DNA of 64,000 nt from Calcarisporiella thermophila CBS 279.70 (GCF_041956535.1 NW_027192207.1:126810-190809); one strand, 5' to 3'; counted from the first letter of the stretch, positions 7,701-63,493 are shown. Translations and numbers: made by a program. Notes: generated by a model from the letters alone, not told the origin.

Positions 7701-8135
7701 TTATTCCTTGGGTGGTCTGCGTGCTCCTTGTGCCTGTACTTGGGGTTGACCCGGTCGCGGCTGCTGCTGCGGCGGGGGCGGCGGCTGTGGAGCAGTTTGC
7801 CAAGCTGGAGCTTGGGGTTTTGGCTGCAGCGGTTGCATGTTGAGGGGATTCAAGTTCAGTGGCTGCAGAGCGTTACCCACCAATTCCTGGGCCCTTCCGC
7901 CGCCTATCTGGGTGAAGAGGCCGCGGATAAGCCCCACCGCCGTGTTGTAAACCTGGCCGAGCGGGTCACGGATCGTGTCCAAAATGGTATCCTGGATACC
8001 GATCGGTTCAAGGAAATCCACCGGCCCAAGGATTTCGGGTATTTTGGGCCGGTTTTCTTTCGGAATGGGCGGTGGGGCCACTACCAGGACCACGCACGCG
8101 AAGAGCACTAGAGTAAATAGAATATGGGATTTCAT
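7701..8135 (-). CDS. Small secreted protein (gene A): signal peptide + conserved DFLEPIGIQDTI module + P/Q-rich tail
   Basis: Intronless 144-aa ORF with signal peptide MKSHILFTLVLFACVVLVVA. Residues 40-98 are highly similar to a segment of 12948..13901. TATAAA lies ~150 bp upstream on the minus strand. Confidence 0.85.
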   Translation of the reverse strand: MKSHILFTLVLFACVVLVVAPPPIPKENRPKIPEILGPVDFLEPIGIQDTILDTIRDPLGQVYNTAVGLIRGLFTQIGGGRAQELVGNALQPLNLNPLNMQPLQPKPQAPAWQTAPQPPPPPQQQPRPGQPQVQAQGARRPPKE

Positions 8136-8799
8136 CTATAGAGGAGGTGTTCTGCTGTCGGGGGAAACGAAGAGATTCTGGCAAAAGAAGTGAAAAAGAA
8201 GAAAGAACTACTGAACGGGATGAGTGGTGGGAAGAGATGAAATCATTTATGAAGGGGTCTATTTGGGCATACGTCCTCAAGATTTATATGGTACTCGATA
8301 GAGTGTTTCAGCATAGCAAGATATGTTTATCCTTCTCGTCATGATGGACTGAAACCCGCTAAACTTTTGACAAGGATGGCCTCCATTTGCTTTTTCGGGC
8401 CGAGATCTGAGCCAGACTTCCGGGGAGTGGGAGAAAACGATTTTCGGCAGGCAAAGTTGTTTGGTCTTACTTTTTTTCCCAGAACCGCTAGGCTATCGGA
8501 GGGCGACCACGTAATTCACCCTTTTATATGGCAGCTTAGAAGATGATTTAAGCACCATTAGGGTTGGTTTTATTACCTCATTTCCCATATGGTTGGACAT
8601 TGTGAGAAAAAAAAAGAGATCCCCTTGCTTATTTTGTCAAGGCCAATCTTTCCACGGATTATCATGAATATCTTATTTGACACTGGTAAAAAAAAAATCG
8701 ACTAGAAAAAACATCAGAAATTTGAGCGGCATGAGTTGATAAACTGCTCAAGTATGGTTTTCTTCACAGGATTGTATGGCCCTTTTCGGACCGGTGGGA

Positions 8800-10200
8800 A
8801 ATTTGTGTGTGAAAGTGTCGATTGTATGTCTCTAATAGATCGGAGACACTACATAGTGAAAGAGGATCCGCAAAGGAAGGTGAAGGATGGTTGATGGTGT
8901 TTTAACGGGAATGCCAGACATATTCCCAAAACTTCTTCTCGCATCTCTAATAGACACCAGCGCAGAATGCTATCATTTTGTGGTGGTGTCCGTGCATCTG
9001 GCCAATCTGTCAAGACAGGTAATCACAATGTCGAGTCGGAGAGGAGTTATCGGCGACAAATCCTGTACATTTCGCTGTCATTTTCTTCTGCACCACCACA
9101 AAAATATATACCTCCCCCGACCGGATAGATTTGTGAAGGATCCCTTTTCTGATCGAGCTCAATGGAGTTGGCCGTTGAGCATAGAAAGTGGGATGAATAC
9201 GCTGCTACAGTAAAGCCTGTTGCTGGTAGCTCTATAGCCTTCAATGTTGTTGTGTTCCCATTATTTTCAAACCAGTAACCTACTAAGTGGGTCGACACTT
9301 GTCTCGAAACAAAAATTTTTAGCGGCATTGATTCCCGCTTAAATTTCATTTCTGGCGATGATTCTCTGAATTTCAGAGCACCGGGAACTGACCCCCTGGA
9401 GTTGTGAAAATCAGCCGGAGCTATATATATTAAATCTGGTTACGATGATGACGAGAGGGAGTCGTTGTCGGCTGGCAACCTCTATTGAAGGAAGGAAAGC
9501 CAGTCAAGTATGAATTTACTTTTGGGGAATGGCATTCCTACCATGGGATTAGAGTTGGCCCAAATGAGGTCCCGTTTTGCTATATCTTGTTAACATGTGT
9601 GGCCCTCTGAAATGGATTTCTCCCAAACACATTGCAATAGTGGGTGGACATCTCTCTCGCATTTAAGCAACCACGCACCAGGGCATTAAAGTGGGCTCTA
9701 CATTTGGTATCGCTCCAGATCTAATAACCGCGTGTTTCGAACGATGAACATATGGGTCAACTGAAACTGAGGGGCTTCTGAAATTTGCCCGGTTATATCG
9801 TGTTAAAGATATTGAATTGCATCTTGAAAATTATCCCAAAATGATCCCCGGAGTGGACGAGACACGGGTTTATTTTCAGCCAAAAAAATTGCATAGCTGG
9901 ACCGGGAACCCGGGAATAATACGAGCCTCCGTCTGTCTCGTGGGCGATTTCTGTTGACGGTGGTCTGCCTACATCGTACGGCACGGTTATCCCCGGTTAC
10001 GAGCTAGCTTGAGGTCGACGAACGTGCATCGAGAGAGATAACGTAAGCTTCCTCTTTCTTTTCTCCCATATCACCGGTGGGGACGTATATCACAAGGACG
10101 ATCGCCCAAACTGCTCTGAGAAACGCGAGAGTTTTGCGCCCATTCCACATCCAAGTAGCTATGTTTTTAACGGTTTCGTGCTCTAATCCCTGGTGCATTT
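8800..10200 (-). pseudogene. Probable decayed coding sequence of unknown family
   Basis: Long protein-like minus-strand reads interrupted by many stops, e.g. ..RDVHPLLQCVWEKSISEGHTC*QDIAKRDLIWANSNPMVGMPFPKSKFILDWLSFLQ*.., plus ORF 9047-9349. Confidence 0.3.
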
Positions 10201-10261
10201 CCTAAATTGACCTCGGACAATCCTGTAGCAACTAGGATGGATGATCTTCCGCCGAATAGTG

Positions 10262-10279
10262 TATATATATATATATATA
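10262..10279. repeat. (TA)9 microsatellite, possibly serving as the TATA element of gene B
   Basis: Read directly; lies ~145 bp upstream of the ATG at 10422. Confidence 0.7.
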
Positions 10280-10421
10280 CTACTAAATCCAAAACACCTC
10301 GGAGCCCTATACGACCTCTACCCGTTAGTGTGTCTCTATTTTGCATTTTCTCACTTGGCATATCCATCTCGATTTCTCTCTTTTTCCCCTTCGTCCCTCT
10401 GCTAAGTTCATTAATTGAAAA

Positions 10422-10976
10422 ATGCTCCTAGTTGCATTTCTCAAGCTCCTCCTTCTCGCTATCAGTGTTGGCGTGGCTTTGGGACATGGGAAACTCACCA
10501 ATCCAGTCGGTTTCCAGATCAAGGACTATGTAAGCACAGTTGACTGCAGACGATATACAACCAGACAGCCCTGTGGAATGGGGGTGAGAATTCCCGCCCC
10601 AGAGAACCCTCCAGAGTATATGGCGGGCGAGTCCATGAGGGTCGTCTGGCGGGTGGCCAATGTCGACGGCGCCGGTCCCATGCAGGCCTATATAGACCCC
10701 AGCGGTACCGGCCAATACTTCACCCAAAACCCGGTGCGTATCCAGTCCGGTGTGCCTGGTATTATTGGGCTTGGGGCACGAGGATTTTACACCATGGCGC
10801 TCCAAACTCCCAACATAAGGTGTGCTGGACCCCAAGGAGCGTGTCTAGTTCGAGTGCAGAATGCGACCGGATTTGCCAGCTGTATCTGGGTTAGGGTTCG
10901 GCCGAGAATGGCCAAGAGAGACGAGGCTGCTGGTTCGGATGCTGAGGACACGGTTGCAAAACCGCAAGCGGAATAG
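10422..10976 (+). CDS. Secreted Egh16-like/DUF3129 (GAS1/MAS-type) protein (gene B)
   Basis: Signal peptide ends ALG|HG, giving a mature N-terminal His. Motifs NVDGAGP, DPSGTG, C.G...ACLVRVQN and GFASC. Ends with KR plus a short acidic tail. Intronless. Confidence 0.75.
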   Translation: MLLVAFLKLLLLAISVGVALGHGKLTNPVGFQIKDYVSTVDCRRYTTRQPCGMGVRIPAPENPPEYMAGESMRVVWRVANVDGAGPMQAYIDPSGTGQYFTQNPVRIQSGVPGIIGLGARGFYTMALQTPNIRCAGPQGACLVRVQNATGFASCIWVRVRPRMAKRDEAAGSDAEDTVAKPQAE

Positions 10977-12947
10977 CCTCTCTAATGACTTGAAGAGTAG
11001 CGTGACGACATTAATCTGAAATCCATTTATCCCTAACTATCTGATAACTAGCACAAATGTATCAATAAGCTTTTATTTTCTTCCACTTTATAATAAAGTC
11101 TAATGGTTTGTAACCTTACGAAACGCGATGCAGCTCCCCATTGATACCTGTGTCTGGGTTTGGAGCCTGACAACCAGGGTTGTAAAAAGGCCGAGAGATA
11201 CAAATAATACGGTATTTCAGTAATCTCCTACTTTTCCTATAGCTACGTCAGCGAAAATAAAACCCCATTGCAAAATGCAACTTGCAACAAATAGTACTCG
11301 ACTTGATGGTTATTATTGTGGGAAATGGCCACGGCCCGATCAAAAACATTTGAATACTGAGCAAGCCAATAGGGAGGGTATAATGACAATGAAACTAGTG
11401 CATCTCAAGCAATGTCCACCTAACATGACGATTAAATATGTAATCAAGAGTCATAGACATCGAATAATTCGTTGAAAAGCGTTCAATACAACGGCGAGCC
11501 TCGAATGGTAGGTGTTCCAACTGCGTTTCCCGTATTCTGGAGCTGTGCATCTACGGCAGGATAGCCTTGTCCTATCTTTTCATGAAAGTTAGAGAGGAAA
11601 CGGGGTGGGGGGAGGGGGGAGGGGGGAGGAAAGGGCAATACAGAGCTCATCCTCTTCACGAAGCTGAAGTATGTCTCCATATAGCCTATTCTTCCGATAA
11701 CGGAGTGCAACGCTACATCCATAGTCGCGCGATATGAATGTAGCATTACACAGGCTTGAGTGCCATGGGCATAAACGAAAAAGTAGAAATAGAGCCGATT
11801 GGTGTGTAAGAGTTTGGGAGCATAGCTTAAAGATAGAACAGCTATATTTAGAGTTGAAAAACAAAAGGGGAGATAATAATCATATGCTATTTTCGTCTCT
11901 GTTCCTGCCAGCGGTCAATGCGCTCTCGACGTATAATGAATTCTGATTCGTATACGTAATATCGGCCTGAGTCAGCTCCATGAGCTCATATGCTGTTTTA
12001 CCGACCGAGTCAGCAAAGAAGGGCGAGCATTCGAAGAACGCTTGGTCATGTAATTTAATTCAACCTCTACAAAACCCTGAGCTGGGTTTTGTTCTGGTCT
12101 GTAGTCTGGTATAACATTCATTGTGGCTAGAACATTGGCCAAGGATTGCGTCCCTCTACAGTTCAAATTAATAAACAATTCACGGCCCGATTTTTAAAAC
12201 CTGTGGCCAAACTGACAGGAAAATTTGCTGCTCAATCTGCACACCGACCGCTGCAGTCAATAATTTGGAAAGGCTTCTCCGGGATGAACGTAAATGCCCA
12301 AAGAGCATGACTTGCCACAAACTCGGCTAAAATTATCTCATTTTCCCAATCCTTTATTTCCTATCTTGCCTGGAAACACGAGAATTATTTTCCACCGGCA
12401 AACCACTCTCGGAAGAAGAGAGCCGCAAAACGGGCTAGCAAAATTAAGGTAAAGTCTGACTTTTGGTCAAATACAGACTCAGGTTTTGGGGGTGGAGGGC
12501 ACAAGAAGAACCATGAAGTGCCTGTGCGGAGGGGCTCTTGGGTAGGTTGAGATAAAAAAAAAAAAGAAACAGTAAGGAGGGGTCGAGGGATAGAGCCCGC
12601 CGGCCCAGGATGGCCTAGAAATGCATACAGAGCAGAACGGCTGACGTGACTTGGTTTTCTAAATTTAGTCGCCCGAGGGATATATTCTGGAATCAGGAAT
12701 ATTAAGGTGGTCCATGCTCCGATAATTTTGTAACTGAGGGTGCTCGAGCAATTTAATGAAATGAAAGGTGGTGATACAGCTCTATTTCCTCGAAATGTGA
12801 TCACATAAGAGGAATAAAACGCCTTTAAATACACCTTAAGTCGGCAAATCTTCACTCCAAATAATCCAAATCCAAACATTCCTTTTTCACCACTACCCTG
12901 GTTCCTCCAACTTCTCCCCTCTTTAGCGCGCTCTCCATAGCATCATC

Positions 12948-13901
12948 ATGGTTGCTGCCACCCTCGTCAAATTCTCTCTGGTTGCCGCGTGCATAGGCAC
13001 CGCGCTTGGCCACGGCAAACTTATCGAGCCGCGCGGGTTCAATGTCCAGAACCCGGTGAACACCATTGACTGCAAACGCTTCACATCAGACCAACCGTGT
13101 GGAACAGGTGTGACCATCCCTGCTCCCGAGAACCCTCCTGAGTACGCTCCTGGCAGTAACGCGCCAATGACCTGGCGCGTTGCCAACGTCGATGGCGCGG
13201 GGCCGTTGCGTGCATACATCGATCCCACCGGCACCGGACAAAACTTCAAAACCGCACTCCGCGTCTCCAACTCTCCTCCTGGTCTCCAGGGCATCGGCCC
13301 GCGCGGCACTTTCAACATCGCCGTGGCAATGCCCACGGACGTAGATTGCCAGGGGCCCGGTGGCGCTTGCCTGCTTCGCGTGCAGAGTCCCACCGGTTTT
13401 GCAAGCTGCACGTGGGTGAAGTTGGGCGGCTCGAATCAGAAGGCCAAGCGTCAGCTTCCCGAGTTCATCCCTGACTTCCTTGATCCCATCGGCATTCAGG
13501 ACACGATCGGCGATACCATCCGTGATCCCCTCGGGCAAGTTGTGAACACGGCACAGGGTCTTATTCGTGGTGTTGCCGACATCGTCGGTGGAAACGAAAG
13601 AGTGGGCAACGTTCTCCGACCCGTGAATCTGAACCCCTTGAGCGGCGTCCTTGGAGGAGGCTCTGGTGGAGCCAGCAGTCGGGCTCAGCCTGCTGCTGCA
13701 GCCGCACCCGCTGCAGCCGGTGCCGCCGTAAAACCGGCATCGGCATCGGCTTCTGCCTCCGGTTCAGCTCGTGTGGCATCCGCCTCGGCGCCCTCAGCTC
13801 AAACTGCTGCCCAGAGGAGCACGAAGCCATCGAAGAAGGCTCCCAAGAAGACCACCAAGAAGAAGACAAAGAAGACTTCCAAGAAAACCTCAAAGCAATG
13901 A
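12948..13901 (+). CDS. Secreted Egh16-like/DUF3129 protein fused via KR to the gene-A module, Ala/Ser linker and Lys-rich tail (gene C)
   Basis: Signal peptide ALG|HG, then the same Cys/NVDGAGP domain as 10422..10976. This is followed by KAKR|QLPEFIPDFLDPIGIQDTI... and a terminal KKAPKKTTKKKTKKTSKKTSKQ. Confidence 0.8.
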   Translation: MVAATLVKFSLVAACIGTALGHGKLIEPRGFNVQNPVNTIDCKRFTSDQPCGTGVTIPAPENPPEYAPGSNAPMTWRVANVDGAGPLRAYIDPTGTGQNFKTALRVSNSPPGLQGIGPRGTFNIAVAMPTDVDCQGPGGACLLRVQSPTGFASCTWVKLGGSNQKAKRQLPEFIPDFLDPIGIQDTIGDTIRDPLGQVVNTAQGLIRGVADIVGGNERVGNVLRPVNLNPLSGVLGGGSGGASSRAQPAAAAAPAAAGAAVKPASASASASGSARVASASAPSAQTAAQRSTKPSKKAPKKTTKKKTKKTSKKTSKQ

Positions 13902-62383: not shown

Positions 62384-62484
62384 TGAGTCGTGTTCTATAG
62401 AGAATGCTTTTGCTTCCATGGGGATACATATATAAGAACATTTTCAGGTCGTTGGCCTCCAAAATAATTCATTATCTTATAGGG

Positions 62485-63245
62485 NNNNNNNNNNNNNNNN
62501 NNNNNNNNNNNNNNNNNNNNNNNNNNNNNNNNNNNNNNNNNNNNNNNNNNNNNNNNNNNNNNNNNNNNNNNNNNNNNNNNNNNNNNNNNNNNNNNNNNNN
62601 NNNNNNNNNNNNNNNNNNNNNNNNNNNNNNNNNNNNNNNNNNNNNNNNNNNNNNNNNNNNNNNNNNNNNNNNNNNNNNNNNNNNNNNNNNNNNNNNNNNN
62701 NNNNNNNNNNNNNNNNNNNNNNNNNNNNNNNNNNNNNNNNNNNNNNNNNNNNNNNNNNNNNNNNNNNNNNNNNNNNNNNNNNNNNNNNNNNNNNNNNNNN
62801 NNNNNNNNNNNNNNNNNNNNNNNNNNNNNNNNNNNNNNNNNNNNNNNNNNNNNNNNNNNNNNNNNNNNNNNNNNNNNNNNNNNNNNNNNNNNNNNNNNNN
62901 NNNNNNNNNNNNNNNNNNNNNNNNNNNNNNNNNNNNNNNNNNNNNNNNNNNNNNNNNNNNNNNNNNNNNNNNNNNNNNNNNNNNNNNNNNNNNNNNNNNN
63001 NNNNNNNNNNNNNNNNNNNNNNNNNNNNNNNNNNNNNNNNNNNNNNNNNNNNNNNNNNNNNNNNNNNNNNNNNNNNNNNNNNNNNNNNNNNNNNNNNNNN
63101 NNNNNNNNNNNNNNNNNNNNNNNNNNNNNNNNNNNNNNNNNNNNNNNNNNNNNNNNNNNNNNNNNNNNNNNNNNNNNNNNNNNNNNNNNNNNNNNNNNNN
63201 NNNNNNNNNNNNNNNNNNNNNNNNNNNNNNNNNNNNNNNNNNNNN
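62485..63245. other. Assembly gap (761 N)
   Basis: Run of N bases. Confidence 1.
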
Positions 63246-63493
63246 ATAGTACTATCTCTTCTATTTTCGTTTATTTTTTTCCCCTCCCCCTACAATCGCC
63301 CTTTCTATATACATAGTATAATTGTCTAATAACGTGTAATTTTCTTTTGACTAATTCCAATTAAAAATAGTGCTGCGTTTTTCCGTTCCCATTGTGCTTT
63401 CTTCATCCATTTACATTATGGCATGGTATAAGTTCACTTTCCAATAAATCTATTGAGTAGCAAAATAGTGTTCGGGGGAGGGGCTTATATGGA

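Follow-up and report, generated by a model that had tools for sequence, protein, structure and literature searches.

A predicted secreted peptide module encoded alone and behind Egh16-like domains in Calcarisporiella thermophila, with stand-alone relatives in Streptomyces

Calcarisporiella thermophila, an early-diverging soil fungus and the sole member of its phylum in the NCBI taxonomy, carries three neighboring genes for proteins with signal peptides, in which one and the same module of ~60 aa is encoded alone (gene A) and, behind a dibasic KR, as a passenger on an Egh16-like domain (gene C), with a domain gene that lacks the module (gene B) between them. What is this module, where does it come from, and does it depend on the Egh16-like domain? 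Positions are counted in the window, i.e. the whole stretch of 64,000 nucleotides that was analyzed, in which the cassette comprises the following features:

7701..8135, minus strand: gene A, 144 aa; signal peptide, proline-rich leader, module, P/Q tail
7836..8078, minus strand: aa 20-100 of A, its mature region, with homology over the full length to the Streptomyces ORF L039:3827-4225
7905..7992, minus strand: module core of A, 88 nt, 83% DNA identity to the Streptomyces gene
8136..10421, no strand: A-B spacer, 2286 nt, between divergent starts
10422..10976, plus strand: gene B, 184 aa; signal peptide, His1 Egh16-like domain, KR, 18-aa acidic tail
10485-10901, plus strand: Egh16-like domain of B (PF11327)
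10914-10919, plus strand: KR of B, residues 165-166
12948..13901, plus strand: gene C, 317 aa; signal peptide, Egh16-like domain, KR, module, Ala/Ser linker, Lys-rich tail
13011..13427, plus strand: Egh16-like domain of C (aa 22-160), LPMO-type beta-sandwich, His1 only
13446..13454, plus strand: K167-R168-Q169 of C, a predicted Kex2 site followed by Gln as the predicted pyroglutamate start of a putative product
13452..13646, plus strand: module of C (aa 169-233), an invariant Pro flanked by two predicted amphipathic helices, followed by a GN...NLNPL segment; the net charge is -4
13647..13898, plus strand: low-complexity tail of C, 84 aa, with 24 Ala, 15 Ser, 14 Lys and zero acidic residues

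The three frames of the initial annotation were recovered exactly, on the same strands and with the divergent orientation of A and B: all are intact and uninterrupted, and each is 100% identical to a database protein ("intronless" is read here from the open frames, and the signal peptides and cleavage sites of the cassette and its paralogs were assigned by eye). C carries the module of A, as had been claimed (71% identity over 59 aa, E-value 2e-23), together with a domain related to that of B (54% identity over 160 aa, E-value 2e-64), while B is devoid of the module. The flanking genes are ordinary fungal ones (a bHLH-like factor, ribosomal protein L9, a Tubby-like gene). A run of N, either an assembly gap or a withheld stretch, occupies positions 62400-63300 of the window.

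Egh16-like domain and KR site

Members of the Egh16-like (DUF3129) family are tied to host penetration or, in the case of EWCA, to the breakdown of chitin oligomers. The assignment of B and C to this family was borne out by PF11327 scores of 40.4 and 49.2 bits, respectively, against a cut-off of 25, with a match that spans positions 84-176 of the profile only. With Egh16H, GAS1/2, EWCA and TrsA the proteins share, besides passage of the Pfam cut-off, a signal peptide followed by His1, an Asp in place of the second His, and a variable C-terminus. They differ from the described members in that the domains are compact (~139 aa), in that four of them bear a conserved module behind KR-Gln, and in that their host is an early-diverging soil fungus and, to our knowledge, not a pathogen; the link to host penetration that had been suggested initially does not carry over to such an organism.

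In all six Egh16-like domains of the genome the signal peptide ends in A/V-L-G (A-L-G in both B and C, directly ahead of His22), followed by the His, and the Asp of the NxDGxGP motif and the Phe of the TGF motif are invariant. An AlphaFold model of the domain, based on eight alignment rows and covering the core only (pLDDT 60-88), is a beta-sandwich whose best structural match is AA15 (5msz, Z-score 8.9, 119 residues aligned, rmsd 3.0), followed by AA10, AA13, AA11 and X325. The domain of B and C is thus of a known kind, Egh16-like with an LPMO fold, and any enzymatic activity is putative. Similarity to the LPMOs (AA10, AA11, AA15) and to X325 extends to the N-terminal His and to the late Phe in the TGF motif; the difference is that B, C and three paralogs, five domains out of six, have a single His and hence no canonical two-histidine brace, so that copper binding is putative as well. 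The Egh16-like family has been described as having a conserved Asp that replaces the second brace His (PMC6950343) and as variable at the C-terminus (PMC11378017), and one member, TrsA, has copper-dependent oxidase activity (PMC12377627); the TrsA model possesses a second His, and in Calcarisporiella only the paralog P0008 has one. Five Cys are invariant in all six domains (window 10485-10901 and 13011-13427), an odd count for a secreted domain, and one of them might be free, bind a metal or take part in an intermolecular bond. A word-seeded search with the Egh16-like domains revealed no relative outside the C. thermophila genome.

The KR that had been located after the domain is present in both proteins (residues 165-166 in B and 167-168 in C). 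A KR followed by Gln precedes the module in all five fungal copies other than A (the four fused genes and P0004), and in three of the four fused genes two dibasic sites flank a spacer. No fewer than four full kexin genes, complete with catalytic motifs and P-domains, are found in the genome (C5:1111919, C7:757755, C17:258385 and C19:558104; loci L048, L050, L052 and L051), compared with usually one in most fungi. Cleavage of C after its predicted kexin site appears plausible.

The module and its relatives in Streptomyces

The claim that the module is undescribed held: none of 11 module rows matched a Pfam family at E-values up to 1, NCBIfam gave no relevant match, no PDB sequence was hit, and the ESM Atlas yielded nothing usable. 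We conclude from these comparisons that the module represents a hitherto undescribed family of predicted secreted proteins. Its structural model, of low confidence (pLDDT 59, pTM 0.27), suggests a long helix running through the invariant Pro and a short second helix. Both halves of the module are amphipathic, with a hydrophobic moment of 0.42-0.54 for helix 2 (shuffle p 0.001-0.025 in five well-aligned fungal copies), and the net charge ranges from 0 to -5 across the copies. Purifying selection acts on the core of the module, with pN of 0.13-0.27 against pS of 0.69-0.88 among the copies in A, C and the fused genes on contigs C33 and C9. Across the fungal copies core identity drops to 27-35%.

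A profile of six fungal copies, searched against 1.84 billion representative sequences, retrieved no other fungus, but only C. thermophila proteins and four small proteins with E-values of 2e-6 to 3e-4: P0011 (Streptomyces sp. NPDC055254), P0013 (S. eurythermus), P0010, whose gene is 71% identical to that of P0011 over 200 nt of DNA, and the fragment P0012. P0010, P0011 and P0013 consist of little more than an actinobacterial signal peptide and the module core. An ORF of Streptomyces sp. NPDC052101 (L039:3827-4225) that is colinear with mature A (50% identity over 94 aa) came from a further scan, in which each bacterial and archaeal species was represented by a single genome. In the core, 23 of 26 residues are identical between the two, the genes are 83% identical over 88 nt (pairwise E-value 5e-23), and the core pN of 0.05, the lowest among all pairs, counts toward homology; none of 5000 shuffles reached the score of the proline-rich leader or that of the C-terminal segment. 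A and this ORF are closer to each other than either is to its own kin.

The copies have a native context on both sides, A on a 695-kb contig with ordinary fungal genes around it and the bacterial ones on Streptomyces contigs, one of which is a 9.26-Mb chromosome; the match between kingdoms thus reflects homology, and contamination as its source was ruled out. With its closest relatives in another kingdom, A has the features of a horizontally transferred gene.

Within Streptomyces the family is rare and patchy. Five overlapping samples of 300-400 actinobacterial genomes, with the best candidates per genome scored, contained no further true copy; two metagenome scans found nothing, and tblastn on plasmids and phages gave only E-values of 0.4-1. 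Rejected candidates were L040 (an off-frame match within another gene), L043 (a brief segment within a phage protein of 1205 aa), G309 (17 residues of a 638-aa frame), and weak profile matches to P0009 (plectin repeats) and P0014 (HYR repeats) that we regard as chance. The bacterial copies are diverse (46-69% core identity), carry native actinobacterial signal peptides and lie in accessory regions with transposases or integrase-like genes, in one case with an Imm49 gene. Their GC3 is 0.68-0.77, compared with 0.86-0.92 in core-type neighbors, and the loci have neither common flanks nor a conserved neighboring immunity gene. No LPMO gene was called beside them, and an Egh16-like domain was found neither in the one carrier genome examined (NPDC052101) nor in 150 other Streptomyces genomes. 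A search for a link between the module and PF11327, proposed with the initial annotation, gave a divided answer: the module is fused to the domain in four of the six Calcarisporiella genes and stands alone in Streptomyces. In the NPDC052101 locus a DnaE-like gene (L039:4435-8034) lies tail to tail with the module gene, and the region also bears integrase-like and NB-ARC/TPR-like genes. In S. eurythermus a frame resembling a ricin-B-type lectin (by eye, interrupted by a stop) is found at L036:5311-5847, 150 nt upstream of the module gene and on the same strand.

Spread of the family within the Calcarisporiella genome

The genome encodes six Egh16-like genes and six copies of the module. Four genes are fusions (C and those on contigs C33, C9 and C20), two Egh16-like genes are without the module (B and its closest paralog, a 79% identical twin on contig C14), and two genes encode the module only (A, and P0004 on contig C20), both of them less than 20 kb from an Egh16-like gene. 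P0008 (L006:1453-2367, near 320k on C20) is the most diverged fused paralog and has the most diverged module; its second His stands just ahead of the NxDG motif, and a long acidic spacer separates its two KR sites. P0004, taken here as the spliced database protein, contains the only intron of the family, a spliceosomal one (L005:1401-1489), which interrupts the module after helix 2 and ahead of its C-terminal segment.

In the module tree (11 rows, 65 columns, unrooted) A groups with the Streptomyces sequences, apart from the five other fungal copies (support 96/93), and P0004 sits among the fused copies; the tree of the Egh16-like domains likewise has no outgroup. The data reject a sister relationship of the A and C modules (AU test, p=0.018) and the placement of the two module-only genes in one clade (p 0.006), but not monophyly of the fungal modules (p 0.38). 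This rules out A as a fission product of C, and with it the reading of the locus as a simple fission of C. The complementary description of C as B and A fused holds for the parts in common, the domain and the module, but not for the particular genes, since the A and C modules are not sisters. A has no KR ahead of its module. Neither a module nor a domain remnant was found in the A-B spacer.

The two module-only genes have different histories. P0004 arose from a fused gene by loss of the domain following a segmental duplication, as shown by the synteny of C20:331-341k with C9:665-683k and by its signal peptide. Collinear blocks at C20:331000-346000, with P0004, and C9:665000-685000, with the fused C9 gene, share a Pumilio-like gene, a module gene and a Chs5-like gene, and represent an old segmental or whole-genome duplication; the signal peptide of P0004 resembles those of the fused genes C, C33 and C9 (shuffle p 0.0035 or less), which that of A does not. 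A chitin synthase-like gene is located at C20:349-351k. A is the stand-alone, Streptomyces-like form, and its position beside B and C suggests that the fusion arose at the cassette locus. The C14 gene ends in domain-KR-spacer-KR-stop, which resembles a shortened fused layout; no module gene was found on its contig, and no decayed module downstream of it or of B.

As to the direction of transfer, the absence of the module from other fungi among the 1.84 billion representatives argues for a bacterial donor, which we consider probable, and bacterium to fungus is also the commoner direction of gene transfer in general. The reverse, in which the module is an old Calcarisporiella invention passed to Streptomyces by an A-like donor, is kept in play by the depth of the fungal copies (their low core identity, the intron in one of them, an age greater than that of the segmental duplication), by the rarity and low GC3 of the bacterial ones, and by the proximity of A to the NPDC052101 ORF; it is nevertheless unlikely, given the diversity and native signal peptides of the bacterial copies, and the tree, which is unrooted, does not reject fungal monophyly. 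Several transfer events or a third donor appear less likely still.

Possible roles of the module

We propose, with a probability of roughly 0.4, that the module is an autonomous surface peptide that was transferred between kingdoms and recruited as a Kex2-releasable passenger. It would be a secreted peptide domain of two amphipathic, net-anionic helices that most likely acts at a surface, where it would bind to or coat either the wall of the hypha or an air/lipid interface. Its occurrence as a secreted protein by itself, in Streptomyces and as A, means that it probably works without the Egh16-like domain. Horizontal transfer would have placed it in both the Streptomyces and the Calcarisporiella lineage, with A retaining the stand-alone layout, and one copy would have become fused behind the KR of an Egh16-like gene to yield a polyprotein. 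A Golgi kexin would cut after KR and free both the domain and the Gln-capped module; the freed domain, with its His1 LPMO fold, may bind or remodel the fungus's own chitin/chitosan wall, on which a Lys- or Gly-rich tail may hold the module (the tails of C, the C9 gene and P0004 are rich in Lys and may bind anionic polymers of the wall). The benefit of fusion would then be co-expression and co-delivery to one wall site rather than an obligate complex.

The release logic has a precedent in Ustilago Rep1, from which kexin liberates amphipathic wall peptides (PMC3133707). Like these repellents and other KEPs, the fused proteins are predicted secreted precursors with dibasic sites and amphipathic products of similar size, in an organism that has kexin; unlike them, they carry a single, unrepeated module that is fused to an enzyme-fold domain, is predicted to be helical, has bacterial homologs and shows no sequence similarity that we could find. 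Chaplins, rodlins and other small secreted surface proteins of Streptomyces resemble it as short proteins that actinobacteria secrete and that have an amphipathic core, but the module matches neither Pfam nor NCBIfam and is rare and accessory rather than core. Repellents and chaplins form beta-amyloid, which together with the predicted helices speaks against a surface role, as do the patchy distribution in Streptomyces, odd for a developmental coat protein, and the fact that amphipathic helices would equally suit membrane-active or protein-binding roles.

The last point leads to a different reading, in which the module would act on membranes or block enzymes as a peptide directed against other soil microbes, and the LPMO-like domain delivered with it would open the chitin wall of the competitor. 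Kexin-released amphipathic toxins are known in fungi (candidalysin), the shortest bacterial forms are approximately a signal peptide and the core alone, and the low-GC3 accessory loci with mobile elements and an Imm49 gene would fit such a weapon; however, a net charge of 0 to -5 is unlike that of cationic antimicrobial peptides, the module resembles no toxin family in Pfam, NCBIfam or the PDB, and no immunity gene accompanies it consistently, so we regard this reading as unlikely. Somewhat less likely again is the obligate two-component system of the initial annotation, whose module would serve the Egh16-like domain as chaperone, inhibitor or anchor, either in cis (in C) or in trans (by A together with B). 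That claim is partly supported: KR-Gln is kept, the fusion recurs in four of six domains, kexins are present, both module-only genes are close to an Egh16-like gene, and A and B are divergent. On the other side, the module stands alone in Streptomyces, with no Egh16-like domain in the one carrier genome examined, the C14 twin of B has no module nearby, the proximity on C20 stems from duplication history, and the papers on Egh16-like proteins (PMC12377627, PMC11378017) describe no partner of this kind; the AlphaFold model of the fused protein shows no confident contact, although with the module region below pLDDT 50 it is uninformative on this point. The least likely of the readings is that the KR is cut rarely or never and the module stays attached, as a CBM-like anchor or a disordered C-terminal extension. 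About 60% of LPMOs bear C-terminal extensions of unknown role (PMC8615602), the C-termini of Egh16-like proteins vary (PMC11378017), and low-complexity tails follow the module; yet KR-Gln is retained in all fused copies, three of them have a spacer between two dibasic sites, and the module is encoded without a catalytic partner in A, in P0004 and in Streptomyces.

The cassette is real, its domain belongs to a known family, and its passenger belongs to an undescribed peptide family of two kingdoms, whose only members outside the Calcarisporiella genome are rare, stand-alone Streptomyces proteins with signal peptides. Eleven sequences, six fungal and five of bacterial type, make up this small family at present, and its function is putative. 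We tentatively suggest that an amphipathic peptide family was exchanged between two filamentous soil kingdoms and built into a polyprotein, such that a single precursor would deliver an LPMO-like enzyme with one His and a peptide of bacterial type, acting jointly at the hyphal surface or on a competitor. A single genome preserves the stages from a gene that stands alone, through its fusion behind a kexin site and duplication, to a later loss of the domain, and very short secreted peptides have seldom been documented as transferred genes. The module is amenable to synthesis and direct assay, and a non-pathogen with six Egh16-like genes offers a clean setting in which to study the role of this family in a fungus's own wall and copper binding by its His/Asp site.
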